Part shown: positions 20,068 to 62,010 of the stretch, in pieces | Numbering within the stretch: the stretch's first letter is position 1 | Layout: every line of letters begins with the position of its first letter | Program-made: the position numbers and the translations under genes | The notes under the pieces: model-generated | Database searches by the model: none | What the model was told of the DNA's origin: nothing | What the model saw: only the letters and a program-made list of their open reading frames with translations | Assembly: GCA_964188305.1 (NCBI GenBank) | Contig: OZ076902.1 | Strand: one strand, 5' to 3' | Length of the DNA: 64,000 nt | Source: Podarcis bocagei | Lineage: Eukaryota

Positions 20068-20547
<480 letters not shown>

Positions 20548-45023: not shown

Positions 45024-45897
45024 CTGGATTTCGACAGGTGAGAATCGGCCTCGTTGGCGCATCCTGGAGCGGCTGCTCCGAAGAGCCACCCAAGCCAATT
45101 TCCCTTTGCAGTTCCAGCGCCCTCAAGCTTTTCGGCTGCCTCCTGGGCATCAGGCAAGCAGGTCGCCTCTGGCTTCCCTGCAGCTTCCCCTACGGGTGAG
45201 CTGCCTTCTTCGCAGACAGCGGGTGCCTGCCTTGGGCTCTCCACTGAGCTGCTTCCTCTGGGGCTGGGCGCTTGGGGCAGCACGTCGGGGCTCACGCTGG
45301 CTTCTCCAGCCCCGCTGTGGGCCGCCTCCACAGCTTCTCCCAGAGCCGCCCTCAGCTTGGTCCAGTGGGTGTGAGGGAAGCCCTCCTGCTTCGGGGGCTC
45401 GCTATAGACCCCCGAAGCCCGGCTCAGCTGCTCCCACCAGCTTTGTTGCTTCTCTTCGCTCTCCTGGCAGCTCCCTTCAGCACCCGCCTCCGCCTCGGGG
45501 GCTCCCTCGCCGCCTCGGAAGGTGTGGCTCAGCCGGTCGCCCCACCGCAGGAGTCTCTGGTGCAAAGGCGGCCCGGCCTGGGGCTCGTGGAGCGGGCTAG
45601 ATTGGGCCACGGGCCCTTCCGCCAGGCCGGCGAGAGGAGGCGGGCGTTTGGGCAAAGTGACTCGGCTCCCTCCCCGAGCCTTCTGGGAACCGGCCAGCAG
45701 CTCAGTCGGTGTGGTGGGACGCCGGGGTGGCGGCCGGACGTCGAGTGGCAGGTGCTGGTGCTCGAAGAGGAGGTCCAGCTGGAAGGTCAGCATGGAGAGC
45801 GGTTGGAGCAGCAGGAGGAGCTCATCGGCCCAGCGGCGGCAGAAGCCTTGGCTGAGTACCAGGAAGGCGGTGGGCAAGTACAGCGCCGAGATCAGCT
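45024..45897 (-). CDS. RUSC1: RUSC1 large exon (ELISALYLPTAF..ELLLLLQPLSMLTFQLDLLFEH..SWWEQLSRAS..WLGWLFG..KSR)
   Basis: cacag|AG acceptor, AG|gtaagt donor; 874 nt, phases fit. Confidence 0.95.
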
Positions 45898-46133
45898 CTG
45901 TGGGGTTGGGAGACGGCATGAACAGGTCAGAAACGCATCCTTCTAAGTCTGTCTCAACTTTGCTGTTGGATTACAAAGCCACTTCTGACCTCAGGAGGAG
46001 GTGGTGTTGCGGGCTCATGCCCCAACACCCGCACAGCGCAGCCTGGGATCTCCCTCTTTGGCCACTCAGCTTTTTAGGTTTCCCGCCCGCCTGCCCTTCA
46101 AGGTTTCCTTTCTGACCTTGCTCTGGACCTCGG

Positions 46134-47026: not shown

Positions 47027-47886
47027 TAGTGGTGCCTCGCAAGACGAAATTAATTCGTTCCGCAAGTCTCTTCGTCTTGCGAGTTTTTCGTCTTGCGATG
47101 CACGGTTTCCCATAGGAATGCATTGAAAATCAATTAATGCGTTCCTAGGGAAACCGCCTTCAGACCAGGTCCGGGGACAGTCTGTCCCCGGACCTCTTCT
47201 GAAGGCTGGGGGGGGGGGGGACAAGGGCTTTTCTTCCCACCCCCAGCATTTTAAAAAACCCCGGGACAGCGGAGGACTTCTCCGCTGTCCGGGCGATCTT
47301 AAAATGCTGGCGGGCGGCATTTTAAAATCGCCCCGGGACAGCGGAGGACTTCTCCACTGTCCGGGGCGATTTAAAAGCCCCTGGGAAGGCAGGCAGGGGG
47401 GACAAAGACTTTTGCCCCCCGCCTGGACCTCTTCTGAAGGCGGGCGGGGGGCGAAAGTCTTTGCTCCCCCCGCCTGCCTTCAAAAGCCCGCCGGGACAGG
47501 CAGGCAGGGGGGAGCAAAGACTTTCGCCCCCCGCCCGCCTTCAGAAGGTGTTCCCTCCCCGCCGCCCGGCTTCGGAACGATGCTCCGAAGCCGGGCGGCG
47601 GGGCAGGTGTTCCCTCCCCGCCGCCCGGCTTCGGAGCATCGTTCCGAAGCCCGGCGGCGGCGGGAGGAGGCGTTCCCGCCCCACCGCCCGGCTTCGGAGG
47701 AGGTCTGAGGACAGTGGGGAAGACGCGCTGCGCTTCCCCGCTGTCCCGGATATTTCCCTATGGGCTGTCGTCTTGCGAAGCAAGCCCATAGGGAAATTCG
47801 TCTTGCGAAGCGCCTCCAAAACGGAAAACCCTTTCGTCTAGCGGGTTTTCCGTCTTGCGAGGCGTTCGTCTTGCGAGGTACCACTG
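47027..47886. mobile_element. Long Tc1/pogo-type non-autonomous element with GC-rich internal repeats
   Basis: TIR (t)agtggtgcctcgcaagacgaa / ttcgtcttgcgaggtaccactg, TA TSD. Confidence 0.85.
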
Positions 47887-48091
47887 TACGTGCCTGTGTT
47901 AAGATTCCTGCACTGCAGGGGGTTGGACTAGATGACCACAGGGGTCCCTTCCAACTCTATGATTCTATGGTAGGCGTGCTTAAACAAAAGAGGGTTTTAG
48001 CAGGCACCAAAAAGAGTAATGCACAGGCACTTGCCTAATATCAGTACGTCGTGGAGGTGCTAATAAAAAACGTGGGGTGCCCCAAATTTAC

Positions 48092-48138
48092 CTGAGTTCC
48101 GCTGCAGGTTGGCAAACCACTGCTCCAACTGCTTCATG
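48092..48138 (-). CDS. RUSC1: RUSC1 47-nt RUN exon (NMKQLEQWFANLQRNS)
   Basis: cgtag|C acceptor, G|gtaaat donor; aligns with recalled human NTKQLELWFSSLQEDA. Confidence 0.92.
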
Positions 48139-48145
48139 CTACGGA

Positions 48146-48969
48146 GATAAGATAGATGAGATAAAACTTTATTCGCATTAGCCAATGGCCATAGCAACAG
48201 TAAAACATTACAGTATACGCAGAAAAGGAAATGTGATATAAGAGCACAATTTAAAGTCCTGAATCAGCAGTCAGTTAGTGGCCCTTATTCTGACTGCCCC
48301 TGCTATGAACCTAGCAAGCTTTGCTGTTATCTGCTCATTTTGATCTGATAGAAGAAAGGAGATTGTGGCAGTGGTTGAGCGCCCTGGGATGGTGAGTACG
48401 AGTGGGGTGATGATCTGGTTCCTCAGGTCTTTGTAGAGAGTACAGGACAGGAGGACGTGTGCCGCTGTTTCGGTGCTACCATCTCCACAGGGGCAAAGGC
48501 GTTCCTCAGACGGGATCTTTTGGAATCGACCCTCAAGTACCGCAGATGGCAAAACATCCAGTCTTGCAAGTGTGAAAGCACGCCTGTATTTTGGAATACA
48601 GTAATAAGTTTGTGCAGATATGGGGCCAGAGAATCAAAATGGAGAGGTGGGAAATGAACATACCAAGGGCAGAATTTCCTTCTAGTGGCCAGGTTGTTCT
48701 GATGCTCAATATCTTTTAGACGTTGACCAATTAGACTGCTTGCTTTAGTAGGGCCCACAGTGAGTAGGTGTTGCGGGGATAGGCCACAAGAGTGAAGTTT
48801 TTGATAGACAGTTTTAAGCCAGGCACTTTTATGGGAGTCTTGAAGTGCTAGGGATAGCAAACCGGGGGGATTTGAGTTTAGGCGGAGCCAGAAGTTAAGA
48901 GTTCTTTGCCAAGTCCGTACTTCTACTGAAGGGAGACTTGCCTCCAGTCTCAATGATGCGTTTGGGACA
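48146..48969 (-). mobile_element. 5'-truncated non-LTR retrotransposon (RTE-X/L1-like ORF2 C-terminus) with 11-12 bp TSD
   Basis: Frameshifted ORF ending in a CCHC knuckle (ERLCPCG..ETAAHVLLSC); AATAAA and (TATC)-like tail; TSD tcatgctacgga at 48134-48145 and 48970-48981. Confidence 0.85.
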
Positions 48970-49442
48970 TCATGCTACGGACGAACAGGCCAAGACAAAG
49001 GGTTTTAGCATCAAACGTAGCAATGCCTGAAAGCTGCCTTGTAGAATCAGACCTTTGGGTCTACCTGGCTCAATACTGACCGGCAACAGCTCTCCAGGGT
49101 TTCGGGTAGGGATCCTTCCCCCCTCAGGGAGGTTGTAAAGGTTGCAGCTGAGACCTTTGGGCATGCAAAAAGGAAACGCTCCATCACTGCGCTATGGGCC
49201 TTGGCCCTAAAAAGAAAGCAAGACCCTAGTCCTCATGGATTTGAGTAAAGGGCTGATTTAAGTTGCCTTGCAGGACGAATACGCCTGCTGGACAAATTCA
49301 GAGGCTGTTAAATATAAATGAAGGATCGACACTGGAATGTTTCGTTGGAATTACCTGGATGAATTAGGGAATGCAGCACAATGTGAGATCATCATTCCCT
49401 GAACTTCAGAGCATGGGGAGTCAACCAAAGATTTATAAAAAA

Positions 49443-49790
49443 GTAAAGGTAAAGGGACCCCTGACCATTAGGTCCAGTAGTGACCGACTCTGGGGTTGTG
49501 GTGCTCATGTCGCTTTATTGGCTTAGGGAGCCGGCGTACAGCTTCCAGGTCATGTGGCCAGCATGACTAAGCCGCTTCTGGCGAACCAGACCAGCGCACA
49601 GAAACGCCGTTTACCTTCCCACCGGAGCGGTACCTATTTATCTACTTGCACTTTGACGTGCTTTCGAACTGCTAGGTTGGCAGGAGCAGGGACCAAGCAA
49701 CGGGAGCTCACCCCGTCGCAGGGATTCGAACCGCCGGCCTTCTGATCGGCAAGTCCTAGGCTCTGTGGTTTAACCCACAGCACCACCCGC
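49443..49790 (-). mobile_element. Sauria SINE
   Basis: Reverse complement of the 34900 copy. Confidence 0.9.
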
Positions 49791-50115
49791 ATTATAATTT
49801 GGCATAAAATTTGGACTGTTTGATTGCATTATAATTTGGAATGTTTCCAAAGTGGCTTTTATTGGCTTGTTAAAATGGAAAACATAATAAATATTATTCT
49901 AAGAAAAAAAAAGAAGATTTAAGTTGCCTTGCACCGTGTGATATGCTTGGTCAATATTGTCCACACTGACTGGCAGCAGCTCTCCAGGGTTTCAGGCAGG
50001 GGACATTCCCAGCCCGACCTGGAGATGCCATTGGGGACTGAACATGCGGGAACCTCCTGCATGTAAGGCAAATGAGTTACAACAACCCACCCCCCACCCA
50101 ATGTCTTCTACTCAC

Positions 50116-57356: not shown

Positions 57357-58691
57357 CTGGAAGAAGATGGGACAGAAAGAAGGGAAGTCAACATATGGAG
57401 GACAAGAAGGTATCTAGTTTCTCTGTGGATGCCAGGATTTTCATTTATTTATTCCAGTTATTAGCCAAGCCCTCACAAAGTGAAACGAAGAAAAAGAAAT
57501 CTTTTTTTAAAACACACACAGAGAGAGAGAGTATGAAGTATTGGGCAGATTCAGACAGTCGTGGCTTGAATTAGATCACCTAAACCCTAATAATAATTAT
57601 AATAATAATAATTTATTTGTACCCTGCCCATCTGGCAAGGTTTCCCCAGCCATTCTGGGCGGCTCCCAACAGAATATTAAACACATGACAAGACATCAAA
57701 CATTAAAAACTTCCCTTTAGGAAAGGGAGAAGTGCAGGTCCTGGATCTCAGCTGAAATGAAAATCCTGTGCCCCTCCAGGTATTGCTGGGATCCAGCTCC
57801 CATCAGCCCCAGCCAGGATGGTCAGAGATGATATACACCTGGGACTGTTCAACTGGTGCAACATGAGACTCTCCATCTCAAGGACATGAGTTGAAGCCCC
57901 ACGCTGGGCAAAAGATTCCTGCATTGCAGGGGATGGGAGTGCATATCCCTTGTGGTCCCTTCCAACTCTATGATTCTATGAATATATGGACCAAGGGAAC
58001 CTTTCAGTGATGGAACAGCCTCAGAGCACTCATCAAACCCAGGTTGGTGCTTGCAGACCAGACCTGGCACTCAGATGTTGGGGAGCAAGAGGGTTGCTTC
58101 TACAGATGTTTTGAGAGATCGTGCTTTGGCATGACAACAAGGAGGGATCCACCTTACTCAGGCAGATGTGCGTCCCCTCCCCGTCACTCTTCCTTTCCCA
58201 CACATCTCCCATCTCCCTGCTCCCCCCAAAAGCAAGATACCTAGATCATTTCGCCACCAGCCCCTTGTGGAATGCCACTTAAAACCAGAGCTTAGAAAGG
58301 TTTTATGATTATTATTAAATGAACTTGTTCTAGTTGAAGATGTCCACACACACAAAAAGGAACTACATGCCTGTTCAGGTTCATCCTTTTACAAAACAAA
58401 CTAGTTCAGTTCTCAGTTTGAGTCCATTCAAGTTATCCACATCAAAAAGAGAGAGGGAAAAATCAACATTCAGAATGTGGCAAGCTGCAGTGCTACGATA
58501 TAGAACACACTGTACTTTCAAAGATGAAGAAAACATCAACACACAAAGCAGAATGTGAATGGTTTCATTTACTTTCCCCAACAATATATATATATATATA
58601 TATATTTGCTTTCGTAGATTTTCACGGGTACAGGAATGCAGGTTTTGGTGTCTTCGGGTGTCTTCCCGTGTAAGAGTTGGGGTGTCTAGGC

Positions 58692-58725
58692 GACGTTTCG
58701 ACGAGGTCTCACTCGTCATCTTCAG
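58692..58725 (-). ncRNA. Minimal type I hammerhead ribozyme motif (left pLTR)
   Basis: Minus strand CTGAAGA-T-GACGAG-tgagac-CTCGTC-GAAAC-GTC. Confidence 0.75.
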
Positions 58726-59603
58726 GCTGGTGCTTTCGGCTTCTTGTTACTGGAACAGAGCAGGATCTCAGTGTTTGAGTTCCTATAAATACTGTTGAGG
58801 GGGTGTGGTGTATAGCATCCAACGTTCTGGGCAGAGAGGAAGTTCCCAGGTTAGTGTGCCTTTTCTTCTTTTGTTCATTAATTACTTGAGGGATATCTTG
58901 AGTGATTTCTTGAGTGATATTCTGAGTACCACTTAGGAGGGTCATTAGGTGTGGATTAGTTGCTAAAGCTTTCGTGTCTTGACCTCTTGAGCTTGTGAAG
59001 AGTTTTTCTGAGAAGATGGCTGTACTGCAAATAGTTGTGCTCTGGCTTGGCTTCGTGTATAGGGGCGAGCTGTGGTTTTGTGCCCTGTGCCAGCCAGATC
59101 TGTGTAGGGATTGCAGGGGGGTGCAGCATCCGGAGGTGCCACTATGGTTTGGCTACTGGATGGTGTCTGTAATTTATCTGTGGAGAGGGTCTGGGTTTGG
59201 GTCTGGTGTGGTTGATTGGAGATGGCGTTCTGTGTGCGTTGATGGCGTTGATTGGAGATGGCGTCCCTATACACGAAGCCAAGCCAGAGCACAACTATTT
59301 GCAGTACAGCCATCTTCTCAGAAAAACTCTTCACAAGCTCAAGAGGTCAAGACACGAAAGCTTTAGCAACTAATCCACACCTAATGACCCTCCTAAGTGG
59401 TACTCAGAATATCACTCAAGAAATCACTCAAGATATCCCTCAAGTAATTAATGAACAAAAGAAGAAAAGGCACACTAACCTGGGAACTTCCTCTCTGCCC
59501 AGAACGTTGGATGCTATACACCACACCCCCTCAACAGTATTTATAGGAACTCAAACACTGAGATCCTGCTCTGTTCCAGTAACAAGAAGCCGAAAGCACC
59601 AGC

Positions 59604-59637
59604 CTGAAGATGACGAGTGAGACCTCGTCGAAACGTC
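59604..59637 (+). ncRNA. Minimal type I hammerhead ribozyme motif (right pLTR)
   Basis: CTGAAGA-T-GACGAG-tgagac-CTCGTC-GAAAC-GTC. Confidence 0.75.
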
Positions 59638-59674
59638 GCCTAGACACCCCAACTCTTACACGGGAAGACACCCG

Positions 59675-59812
59675 NNNNNNNNNNNNNNNNNNNNNNNNNN
59701 NNNNNNNNNNNNNNNNNNNNNNNNNNNNNNNNNNNNNNNNNNNNNNNNNNNNNNNNNNNNNNNNNNNNNNNNNNNNNNNNNNNNNNNNNNNNNNNNNNNN
59801 NNNNNNNNNNNN
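59675..59812. other. Assembly gap (138 N)
   Basis: Run of N. Confidence 1.
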
Positions 59813-61348: not shown

Positions 61349-62010
61349 GTTGCTTGGGAGCTCCCGGCTCTCTGGCTTCCATACTGCCCCAGGGCACTCT
61401 CCCGAGCCCTGCTCCAGCCTGGCTGTCAAGGGGGGCGCGGCGGGCTCCAAACGGCCGCTCGGGCACCTGGCGGGGTGGGAAAGCTAAGGCGGGGAAGGTG
61501 CGGCTGCGGGGGAAGAGGGGTGAGAACAGCACAGCCAAGTCGGGGCTCTCCAGGAAAGGCAGGACGCTCCTGGCAGGGGGGGAGTAGGCCCCGATGGGGG
61601 AGAGGCGGATGGGGAGCAGCTCCTCGGGCGAGAGGGTGCCCAAGACCTGCCCCTGCCGCCCAGCCAGGAGGCAGACCTCCTCGCAGGACAAGGTCTTGAG
61701 CCTGGGGCAGAAGGCCGGGGCAGGAGGGGCAGGGGAGCTCAGCCCCACACTCTCTAAGCCAGTGCAGAGTGAGGGGTGCAGGGGTGCCGGGCCGTCCACC
61801 ACAGAGAAATGGACCAGGAGAGGTGGGTAGGGCAAATTTTGAGGTCTGGAGGAGCGGGCAAGGAGGGCGTCAGCTGCAGGCCAGAGCGAGGGCAAGGGGG
61901 CCAGGAGGTCGTGGCAGCAGGACCAAGGAGCGAAGCCAGTGCAGAGCGAGGGATGGATGGATTTTGGGGGGGGGGAGCACGTGAGGTCGACAAACCAGTG
62001 AGAAATGCAT
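61349..62010 (-). CDS. RUSC1: RUSC1 probable alternative 5' coding exon (..IRLSPIGAYSPP..SPDLAVLFSPLFPRSRTFP..); 5' end uncertain
   Basis: GC-rich open frame; strong donor C|gtaagc in phase with the next exon; motif resembles a recalled mammalian RUSC1 isoform-specific segment. Confidence 0.65.

Follow-up and report, generated by a model that had tools for sequence, protein, structure and literature searches.

A retrotransposon that lands exactly on a splice acceptor, and in doing so copies that acceptor to its other side, raises the question of how the exon behind it can still be spliced, and whether the gene that depends on the exon can still function. The question arises in a 64-kb stretch of DNA from Podarcis bocagei (here the window, at its full length), in which the initial annotation had described a fragment of a long interspersed element (LINE) at the boundary of a short exon of RUSC1 and had offered two outcomes, either a hypomorphic or null allele or the exaptation of LINE sequence as a splice signal with a poison-acceptor switch. 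All of the coordinates given there, including the positions of the repeated 12-mer, the reading frame and the CTAAT motif, hold when recomputed from the sequence.

RUSC1 and its 47-nt exon

The gene on the minus strand of the window is RUSC1, an AP-4 accessory subunit with RUN and SH3 domains. Protein searches returned matches named RUSC1 across reptiles and birds, with the RUSC1 isoforms of Podarcis muralis the closest; human RUSC1 was among the matches too. A splice-aware reconstruction places the last nine coding exons of the gene on this strand, at 61874-61349, 57356-57258, 54436-54360, 51989-51815, 50221-50116, 48138-48092, 45897-45024, 44069-43938 and 42809-42641. Spliced together they give 734 residues with no stop, 716 of which are identical to P. 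muralis RUSC1, and the same procedure reproduced exactly the annotated RUSC1 proteins of P. muralis, P. raffonei, P. lilfordi and Zootoca. The lacertid RUSC1 proteins were retrieved by a word-based protein search with a 750-aa Varanus query. The last exon of the window carries the SH3 domain (Pfam, E 1.6e-11), and in the P. muralis orthologue the RUN domain spans residues 793-926 (Pfam, E 6.7e-21).

The exon at issue is 47 nt long (48138-48092, minus strand), encodes (N)MKQLEQWFANLQRNS and falls within the RUN domain (residues 869-883 in the numbering of P. muralis RUSC1). It reads CATGAAGCAG...GGAACTCAG followed by the donor gtaaat, and is without variation among the four Podarcis species. 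The preceding exon (50221-50116, minus strand) ends in CTGAA with the donor gtgagt after 50116, whilst the following exon (45897-45024, minus strand) is large and, from the reconstruction and the protein matches, holds the end of the RUN domain and a linker.

Two annotated variants of the P. muralis protein touch on the structure of the gene. Isoform X3 (1099 aa) is an annotated alternative in which the 526-nt exon at 61349-61874 is skipped, joining ...SFVE to VRHSQSF. The UniProt entry A0A670JM00 begins with MPSPDPT, which is intronic and lies just upstream of the large exon (window 45898-45919), with the 47-nt exon and all upstream parts absent; Anolis has a similar truncated entry. This truncation probably reflects a habit of annotation, or else a short isoform, and not an effect of the LINE.

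A duplicated splice acceptor

The window has two copies, and no more, of the 12-mer TCATGCTACGGA, at 48134-48145 and 48970-48981. By chance 0.12 matches would be expected with one mismatch allowed, and two or more were found in 1 of 100 shuffles. Read on the minus strand both copies give tccgtag/CATGA (the stroke marks the splice boundary), which is the acceptor of the 47-nt RUN-domain exon, so that the 12 bp take in the AG of the acceptor and the exon's first five bases. The upstream junction reads ...ctttgtcttggcctgttcg tccgtagcatga / tgtcccaaacgcatcattgagactgg on the minus strand and the downstream junction ...aataaagttttatctcatctatcttatc / tccgtagcatga agcagttgg. An insertion point at the intron/exon boundary with a duplication that includes the AG is a duplicated acceptor of the type known from the dog Merle allele.

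The copy that lies upstream in the sense of the gene (48970-48981, minus strand) is an exact 12-mer, identical in the four Podarcis species; the acceptor AG in it, at 48976-48975, is orphaned and still stands in the intron context of the ancestor. The downstream copy (48134-48145, minus strand) has its AG at 48140-48139, and every annotated Podarcis gene model takes this AG as the acceptor; in P. muralis the annotated exon begins right after it (position 20410 of the P. muralis locus sequence). From the upstream AG the frame runs AA/C ATG ATG TCC CAA ACG CAT CAT TGA and meets its stop at 48952-48950, which bears out the claim that only the downstream copy gives an intact reading frame.

The inserted LINE

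Between the two copies lies an 824-bp segment (48146-48969, minus strand) that is the 3' end of a 5'-truncated LINE in the sense of RUSC1, as had been proposed and as is evident from the target-site duplication, the empty sites in Lacerta and Zootoca, homology to ORF2 protein and a gradient of copy number. The exact 12-bp repeat stands directly at both of its ends, and the insert has no second copy elsewhere in the window. It holds two ORF pieces in different frames, the second with a C-x-C-x9-H-x4-C motif and followed by a stop, an AATAAA (48173-48168) and the tail ...tctatcttatc.

The identity of the element was settled by an exhaustive protein search. For the ORF piece at 48953-48423 the match is to residues 597-712 of a P. 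muralis protein of 821 aa (E 5e-37, 59% identity), a region downstream of the RVT_1 domain of that protein (254-507), and the weaker long protein matches contain Exo_endo_phos and RVT_1. The likeness to the APE-type non-LTR retrotransposons of lacertids lies in the part that follows the reverse transcriptase domain. Pfam returned nothing for the two ORF pieces at E 0.1 and at E 10 a sub-threshold zf-RVT (E 0.18) as its sole hit, given by the motif of the second piece, a PDB sequence search with the LINE piece gave no match, and the ESM Atlas gave for it unnamed clusters and a weak zf-RVT lead. The depth of DNA words along the insert from 5' to 3' is 587, 2539, 4403, 3985 and 11422, against 12-27 for single-copy sequence; as it rises towards the 3' end, it forms the kind of gradient in copy number that a LINE family prone to 5' truncation would leave. 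It is apparent that the insert is an APE-type non-LTR retrotransposon made by target-primed reverse transcription.

Membership of the L1 clade was considered and is not supported. Unlike L1, this copy has no poly(A) tail, and a related full-length protein is similar to human L1 ORF2p in the reverse transcriptase domain alone (E 1e-25), little closer than it is to R2 (E 1e-20).

Empty sites and the age of the insertion

The RUSC1 loci of five lacertids were compared with the window: P. muralis, P. raffonei, P. lilfordi, Lacerta agilis and Zootoca vivipara. The last two have an empty site, with a single copy of the target and the 824-bp segment absent, as the initial annotation had suggested could be looked for in related lizards. 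Their alignments to the window break exactly at 48970 and 48146, the two sides overlapping by the target sequence, and the empty site reads ...CTGTTCCTCC(A/G)TAGCATGAAGCAG... (the continuation is also given as TAGCATGAAGCAGTTGG). In P. muralis, P. raffonei and P. lilfordi the insert is present (820-829 bp), with identical junctions and both copies of the repeat, and the orthologous inserts differ by 1.3-3.3%.

The duplication is also found in independent read data. The contigs of another individual of the window species (X3) cover 47968-48187 with 0 differences and 48940-49464, crossing both junctions, and both are likewise crossed by contigs (X12) from a P. muralis-like organism, here organism F, which has 22 of 30 exon variants in common with P. 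muralis; the junction-crossing contigs carry at least 30 LINE letters on the LINE side. The insertion is real, retrotranspositional and old. As the site is empty in Lacerta and Zootoca and filled in Podarcis, the comparison of sequences makes the insertion later than the divergence of Podarcis from Lacerta and Zootoca and earlier than that among these Podarcis lineages. The major Podarcis clades split about 16.7-9.8 million years ago (PMC8114931), and if the four species span the early Podarcis splits the insertion is probably more than about 10 million years old.

Splice signals at the two acceptors

The insertion pushed the native signals 836 bp from the exon. The orphaned branch-site and pyrimidine-tract region (48982-49031, minus strand), which aligns to the end of the intron in L. 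agilis and Z. vivipara, now lies with its branch site and tract more than 850 nt away, with 44 AG dinucleotides between. Branch points in vertebrates are mostly 18-50 nt upstream of the 3' splice site and the first AG downstream is the one chosen. Signals more than 850 nt away behind 44 AGs thus cannot serve the downstream AG.

The sequence that now stands beside the exon is the last 50 nt of the LINE (48146-48195, minus strand), a putative new branch-site and tract region on the basis of its sequence and a heuristic comparison of acceptors. Within its last ~45 nt there are yUnAy matches with the A at -40, -24 and -19. The first is the CTAAT at 48181-48177, with its candidate branch A at 48178, 40 nt ahead of the exon, and the others are candidate residues at 48162 (TTTAT) and 48157 (CTCAT). 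From -20 to -5 the downstream acceptor has 13 pyrimidines of 16 and no G, where the other RUSC1 acceptors have 12-14; the orphaned tract upstream of the first copy has 12 of 16, with 4 G. Judged by composition, the tract of the LINE tail would be at least as good as the one it displaced. Among the four Podarcis species 1 of 50 positions varies in the LINE tail, 3 of 50 in the orphaned region and 4.4% in the rest of the LINE; with so few sites the difference between 1/50 and 4.4% is not significant as conservation of the tail against neutral sequence, and the upstream copy of the duplication with its old tract shows no conservation above the neutral level in the same four species.

The two acceptors also differ in the donors that follow them. 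By an approximate weight matrix the downstream AG has a good donor 47 nt away, and the upstream AG is followed only by a GC donor-like site, 33 nt on, and by a weak GT, 311 nt on. The same scan would delimit a hypothetical, stop-containing exon of 33 nt (48974-48942, minus strand), from the upstream acceptor to GAG/gcaagt. Recursive splicing through the upstream acceptor was considered and set aside, as AG/CATGAT regenerates no donor.

Function of the gene and RNA depth

The RUSC1 reading frame is open in all four insertion-bearing Podarcis species. For the window against P. muralis, P. raffonei and P. lilfordi dS is ~0.08, which places its wall lizard near these three species and apart from them; pairwise dN/dS among the Podarcis species is 0.10-0.21, and each pair has 0 non-synonymous against 8-15 synonymous differences in the RUN domain. 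The annotated RUSC1 proteins of the three references that have the insertion all include ...GLLNMKQLEQWFANLQRNSELISALY, the 47-nt exon being entered at the downstream acceptor, with the caveat that such gene models may lean on protein homology rather than on RNA.

The RNA runs come from organism F and not from the window species. The large exon (45024-45897) is covered in the sense orientation by reads with organism F's own variants. In the run X24 sense depth is ~1-6x in the bins of the large exon and 1.36 over 177 nt in the bin that contains the 47-nt exon, which fits ~4-5x on the exon itself. Over the 3' half of the LINE the depth is 1.4-1.6x, with paralogues counted in; being below the depth of the exons, it argues against routine retention of the whole LINE, as far as depth rather than junction data can tell.

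A pile-up of sense reads at 48540-49070, reaching 163x in X24, is a separate matter. Differences such as 48682 C>A and 48955 G>T are fixed in these reads, and the Podarcis references do not have the change at 48955. The source of the pile-up appears to be a paralogous LINE copy that is expressed from another locus, and it was rejected as evidence on the RUSC1 locus.

Proposed mechanism

The explanation that we favour, with a probability of roughly 0.8, begins in an ancestor of Podarcis, where a 5'-truncated LINE was inserted by target-primed reverse transcription at the boundary of the 47-nt exon, the 12-bp duplication (tccgtag/catga) copying the acceptor AG together with five exon bases. The upstream copy kept the old branch site and tract, now leading into the LINE and after eight codons to a stop, and the downstream copy kept the exon and its donor 47 nt off and gained the pyrimidine-rich tail of the LINE as its upstream neighbour. 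The spliceosome would pick the downstream copy, probably by exon definition that pairs it with the nearby donor, with the last ~45 nt of the LINE supplying branch site and tract and the upstream copy left as a mostly silent decoy. The insertion was tolerated and went to fixation, and RUSC1 stayed functional.

Within this explanation the use of acceptor 48138 in RNA is suggested by depth, annotation and evolutionary constraint. If that acceptor is used and the old signals are too far away, we infer that the branch site and tract can only be those of the LINE tail, and any of its candidate nucleotides may be the branch point. Of the two outcomes first offered, exaptation of the LINE as a splice signal is therefore the best-supported reading, with the annotated transcripts using the downstream acceptor and the role of the LINE tail itself reached by inference. 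Probably the insertion replaced splice signals, was tolerated and did not break the gene.

Alternative explanations

Both acceptors might be in use, with a sizeable share of transcripts spliced to the upstream one at 48974 and RUSC1 lowered or regulated through nonsense-mediated decay, as in the poison-acceptor switch of the initial annotation. The products would be an exon of 883 nt or one of 33 nt ending at the GC donor-like site at 48942, with a stop in both. The upstream AG, its tract (12/16) and the ancestral branch region are indeed intact in all four Podarcis species, and GAG/GCAAGT stands 33 nt downstream with the stop at 48952-48950 before it, although the donor score comes from an approximate matrix. 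No such isoform is present among the annotated proteins, however, the X24 sense depth of the LINE 3' half is below that of the exons even with paralogues and so speaks against common retention of the whole LINE, and the upstream copy and old tract are not conserved beyond neutral. Use of both acceptors on this scale appears unlikely, and it is rather less likely still that the retained acceptor, with either the GC donor-like site or the native donor, forms a LINE-born poison exon that tunes RUSC1 by nonsense-mediated decay. Were this true, a regulated switch would have been created in a single step by the target-site duplication.

The native branch site and tract lie 836 bp from the exon and the upstream acceptor leads to a stop, and it might be assumed from this that correct splicing was destroyed, leaving a null or strongly hypomorphic allele of a gene that is decaying or dispensable in the lineage. 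However, the insertion is common to four species whose clades split roughly 10-17 million years ago if the early splits are spanned (PMC8114931), the frame is intact in all four at the low dN/dS reported above with a RUN domain free of non-synonymous differences, and transcription in the sense orientation is seen. A long-fixed null allele should decay, thus the intact frame and low dN/dS leave this reading unsupported, and the hypomorphic or null allele proposed in the initial annotation does not stand for an insertion shared by at least four Podarcis species and two further individuals, in an intact gene under purifying selection; we consider it very improbable. A further suggestion would have the downstream acceptor served by the distant ancestral branch site, with the LINE a mere spacer. 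The ancestral branch region is retained, but over 850 nt and 44 AG dinucleotides now separate it from the AG, where the usual distance is mostly 18-50 nt. The Merle review likewise gives a distance of ~20-50 bp from branch point to acceptor (PMC7349775), and such long-range use is decidedly unlikely. Least credible of all is an assembly artefact or a structural variant private to the sequenced individual, for which no supporting points were found, as three independent reference assemblies show both junctions, and so do contigs of another individual and of another organism.

Comparison with known systems

The closest described case is the Merle SINE in dog PMEL (SILV), in which a 15-bp duplication includes the original acceptor, element sequence serves as the pyrimidine tract and the acceptors compete (PMC7349775). 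The two are alike in that a retrotransposon sits at an intron/exon boundary with a duplicated acceptor (15 bp there, 12 bp here) and that element sequence stands beside the exon as a tract, a role which is predicted for RUSC1. They differ in that the Merle element is an antisense SINE with an oligo(T) tract, recent, polymorphic and with a phenotype set by the length of its tail, whereas that of RUSC1 is the tail of a sense LINE without poly(A), common to several species, in a gene under purifying selection, and apparently harmless.

Transposable elements such as antisense Alu are known to supply intronic pyrimidine tracts and cryptic splice sites (PMC7349775), and the use of element sequence as a splice signal is a likeness to exonization. 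Exonization usually makes a new and mostly alternative exon, whereas the RUSC1 LINE appears to replace the upstream signals of a conserved, frame-critical constitutive exon and adds no exon sequence. In disease insertions of LINEs and SINEs too, an insertion near an acceptor can disturb exon recognition; the dog FAM161A SINE near a 3' splice site is a disease insertion with exon skipping (PMC3976383). Such insertions are deleterious alleles, whilst that in RUSC1 is fixed and tolerated.

The locus can be regarded as a clean test, set up by nature, of the requirements of a vertebrate 3' splice site, the branch and tract region having been swapped in one event and the old signals remaining as a decoy 836 bp upstream. 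It suggests that an insertion that looks destructive can be neutral, probably through exon definition that favours the acceptor adjacent to the donor, and it advises caution in calling loss of function from the position of an insertion. The filled Podarcis site and the empty sites of Lacerta and Zootoca are a ready minigene pair. It opens no new kind of mechanism, and as a tidy example it will not surprise specialists.

Other features of the surrounding introns

The introns around the exon hold further elements. At 47027-47886 there is an 860-bp insertion, GC-rich, rich in inverted repeats and very high in copy number, that is found in the window species only; P. muralis, P. raffonei, P. lilfordi, L. 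agilis and Z. vivipara have no break at the orthologous point. With this insertion 206 nt downstream of its donor, the 47-nt exon has, in the window species, young insertions on both sides. Genomic word depth runs into the millions for a SINE-like element at 49439-49791, which the Podarcis loci have and L. agilis lacks; Z. vivipara is without 49272-49917.

In organism F a contig (X12, record 6) joins 49219 to 50101, so that ~881 bp of intron (49220-50100) are missing, to within 15 nt of the donor. The P. muralis reference has 49220-50100, and the gap in organism F could be a deletion allele or a mis-join of the contig. Further upstream in the gene, 58605-59812 is occupied by an inverted-repeat element with a run of N at 59675-59812, which the initial annotation had flagged as Penelope-like with hammerhead motifs.
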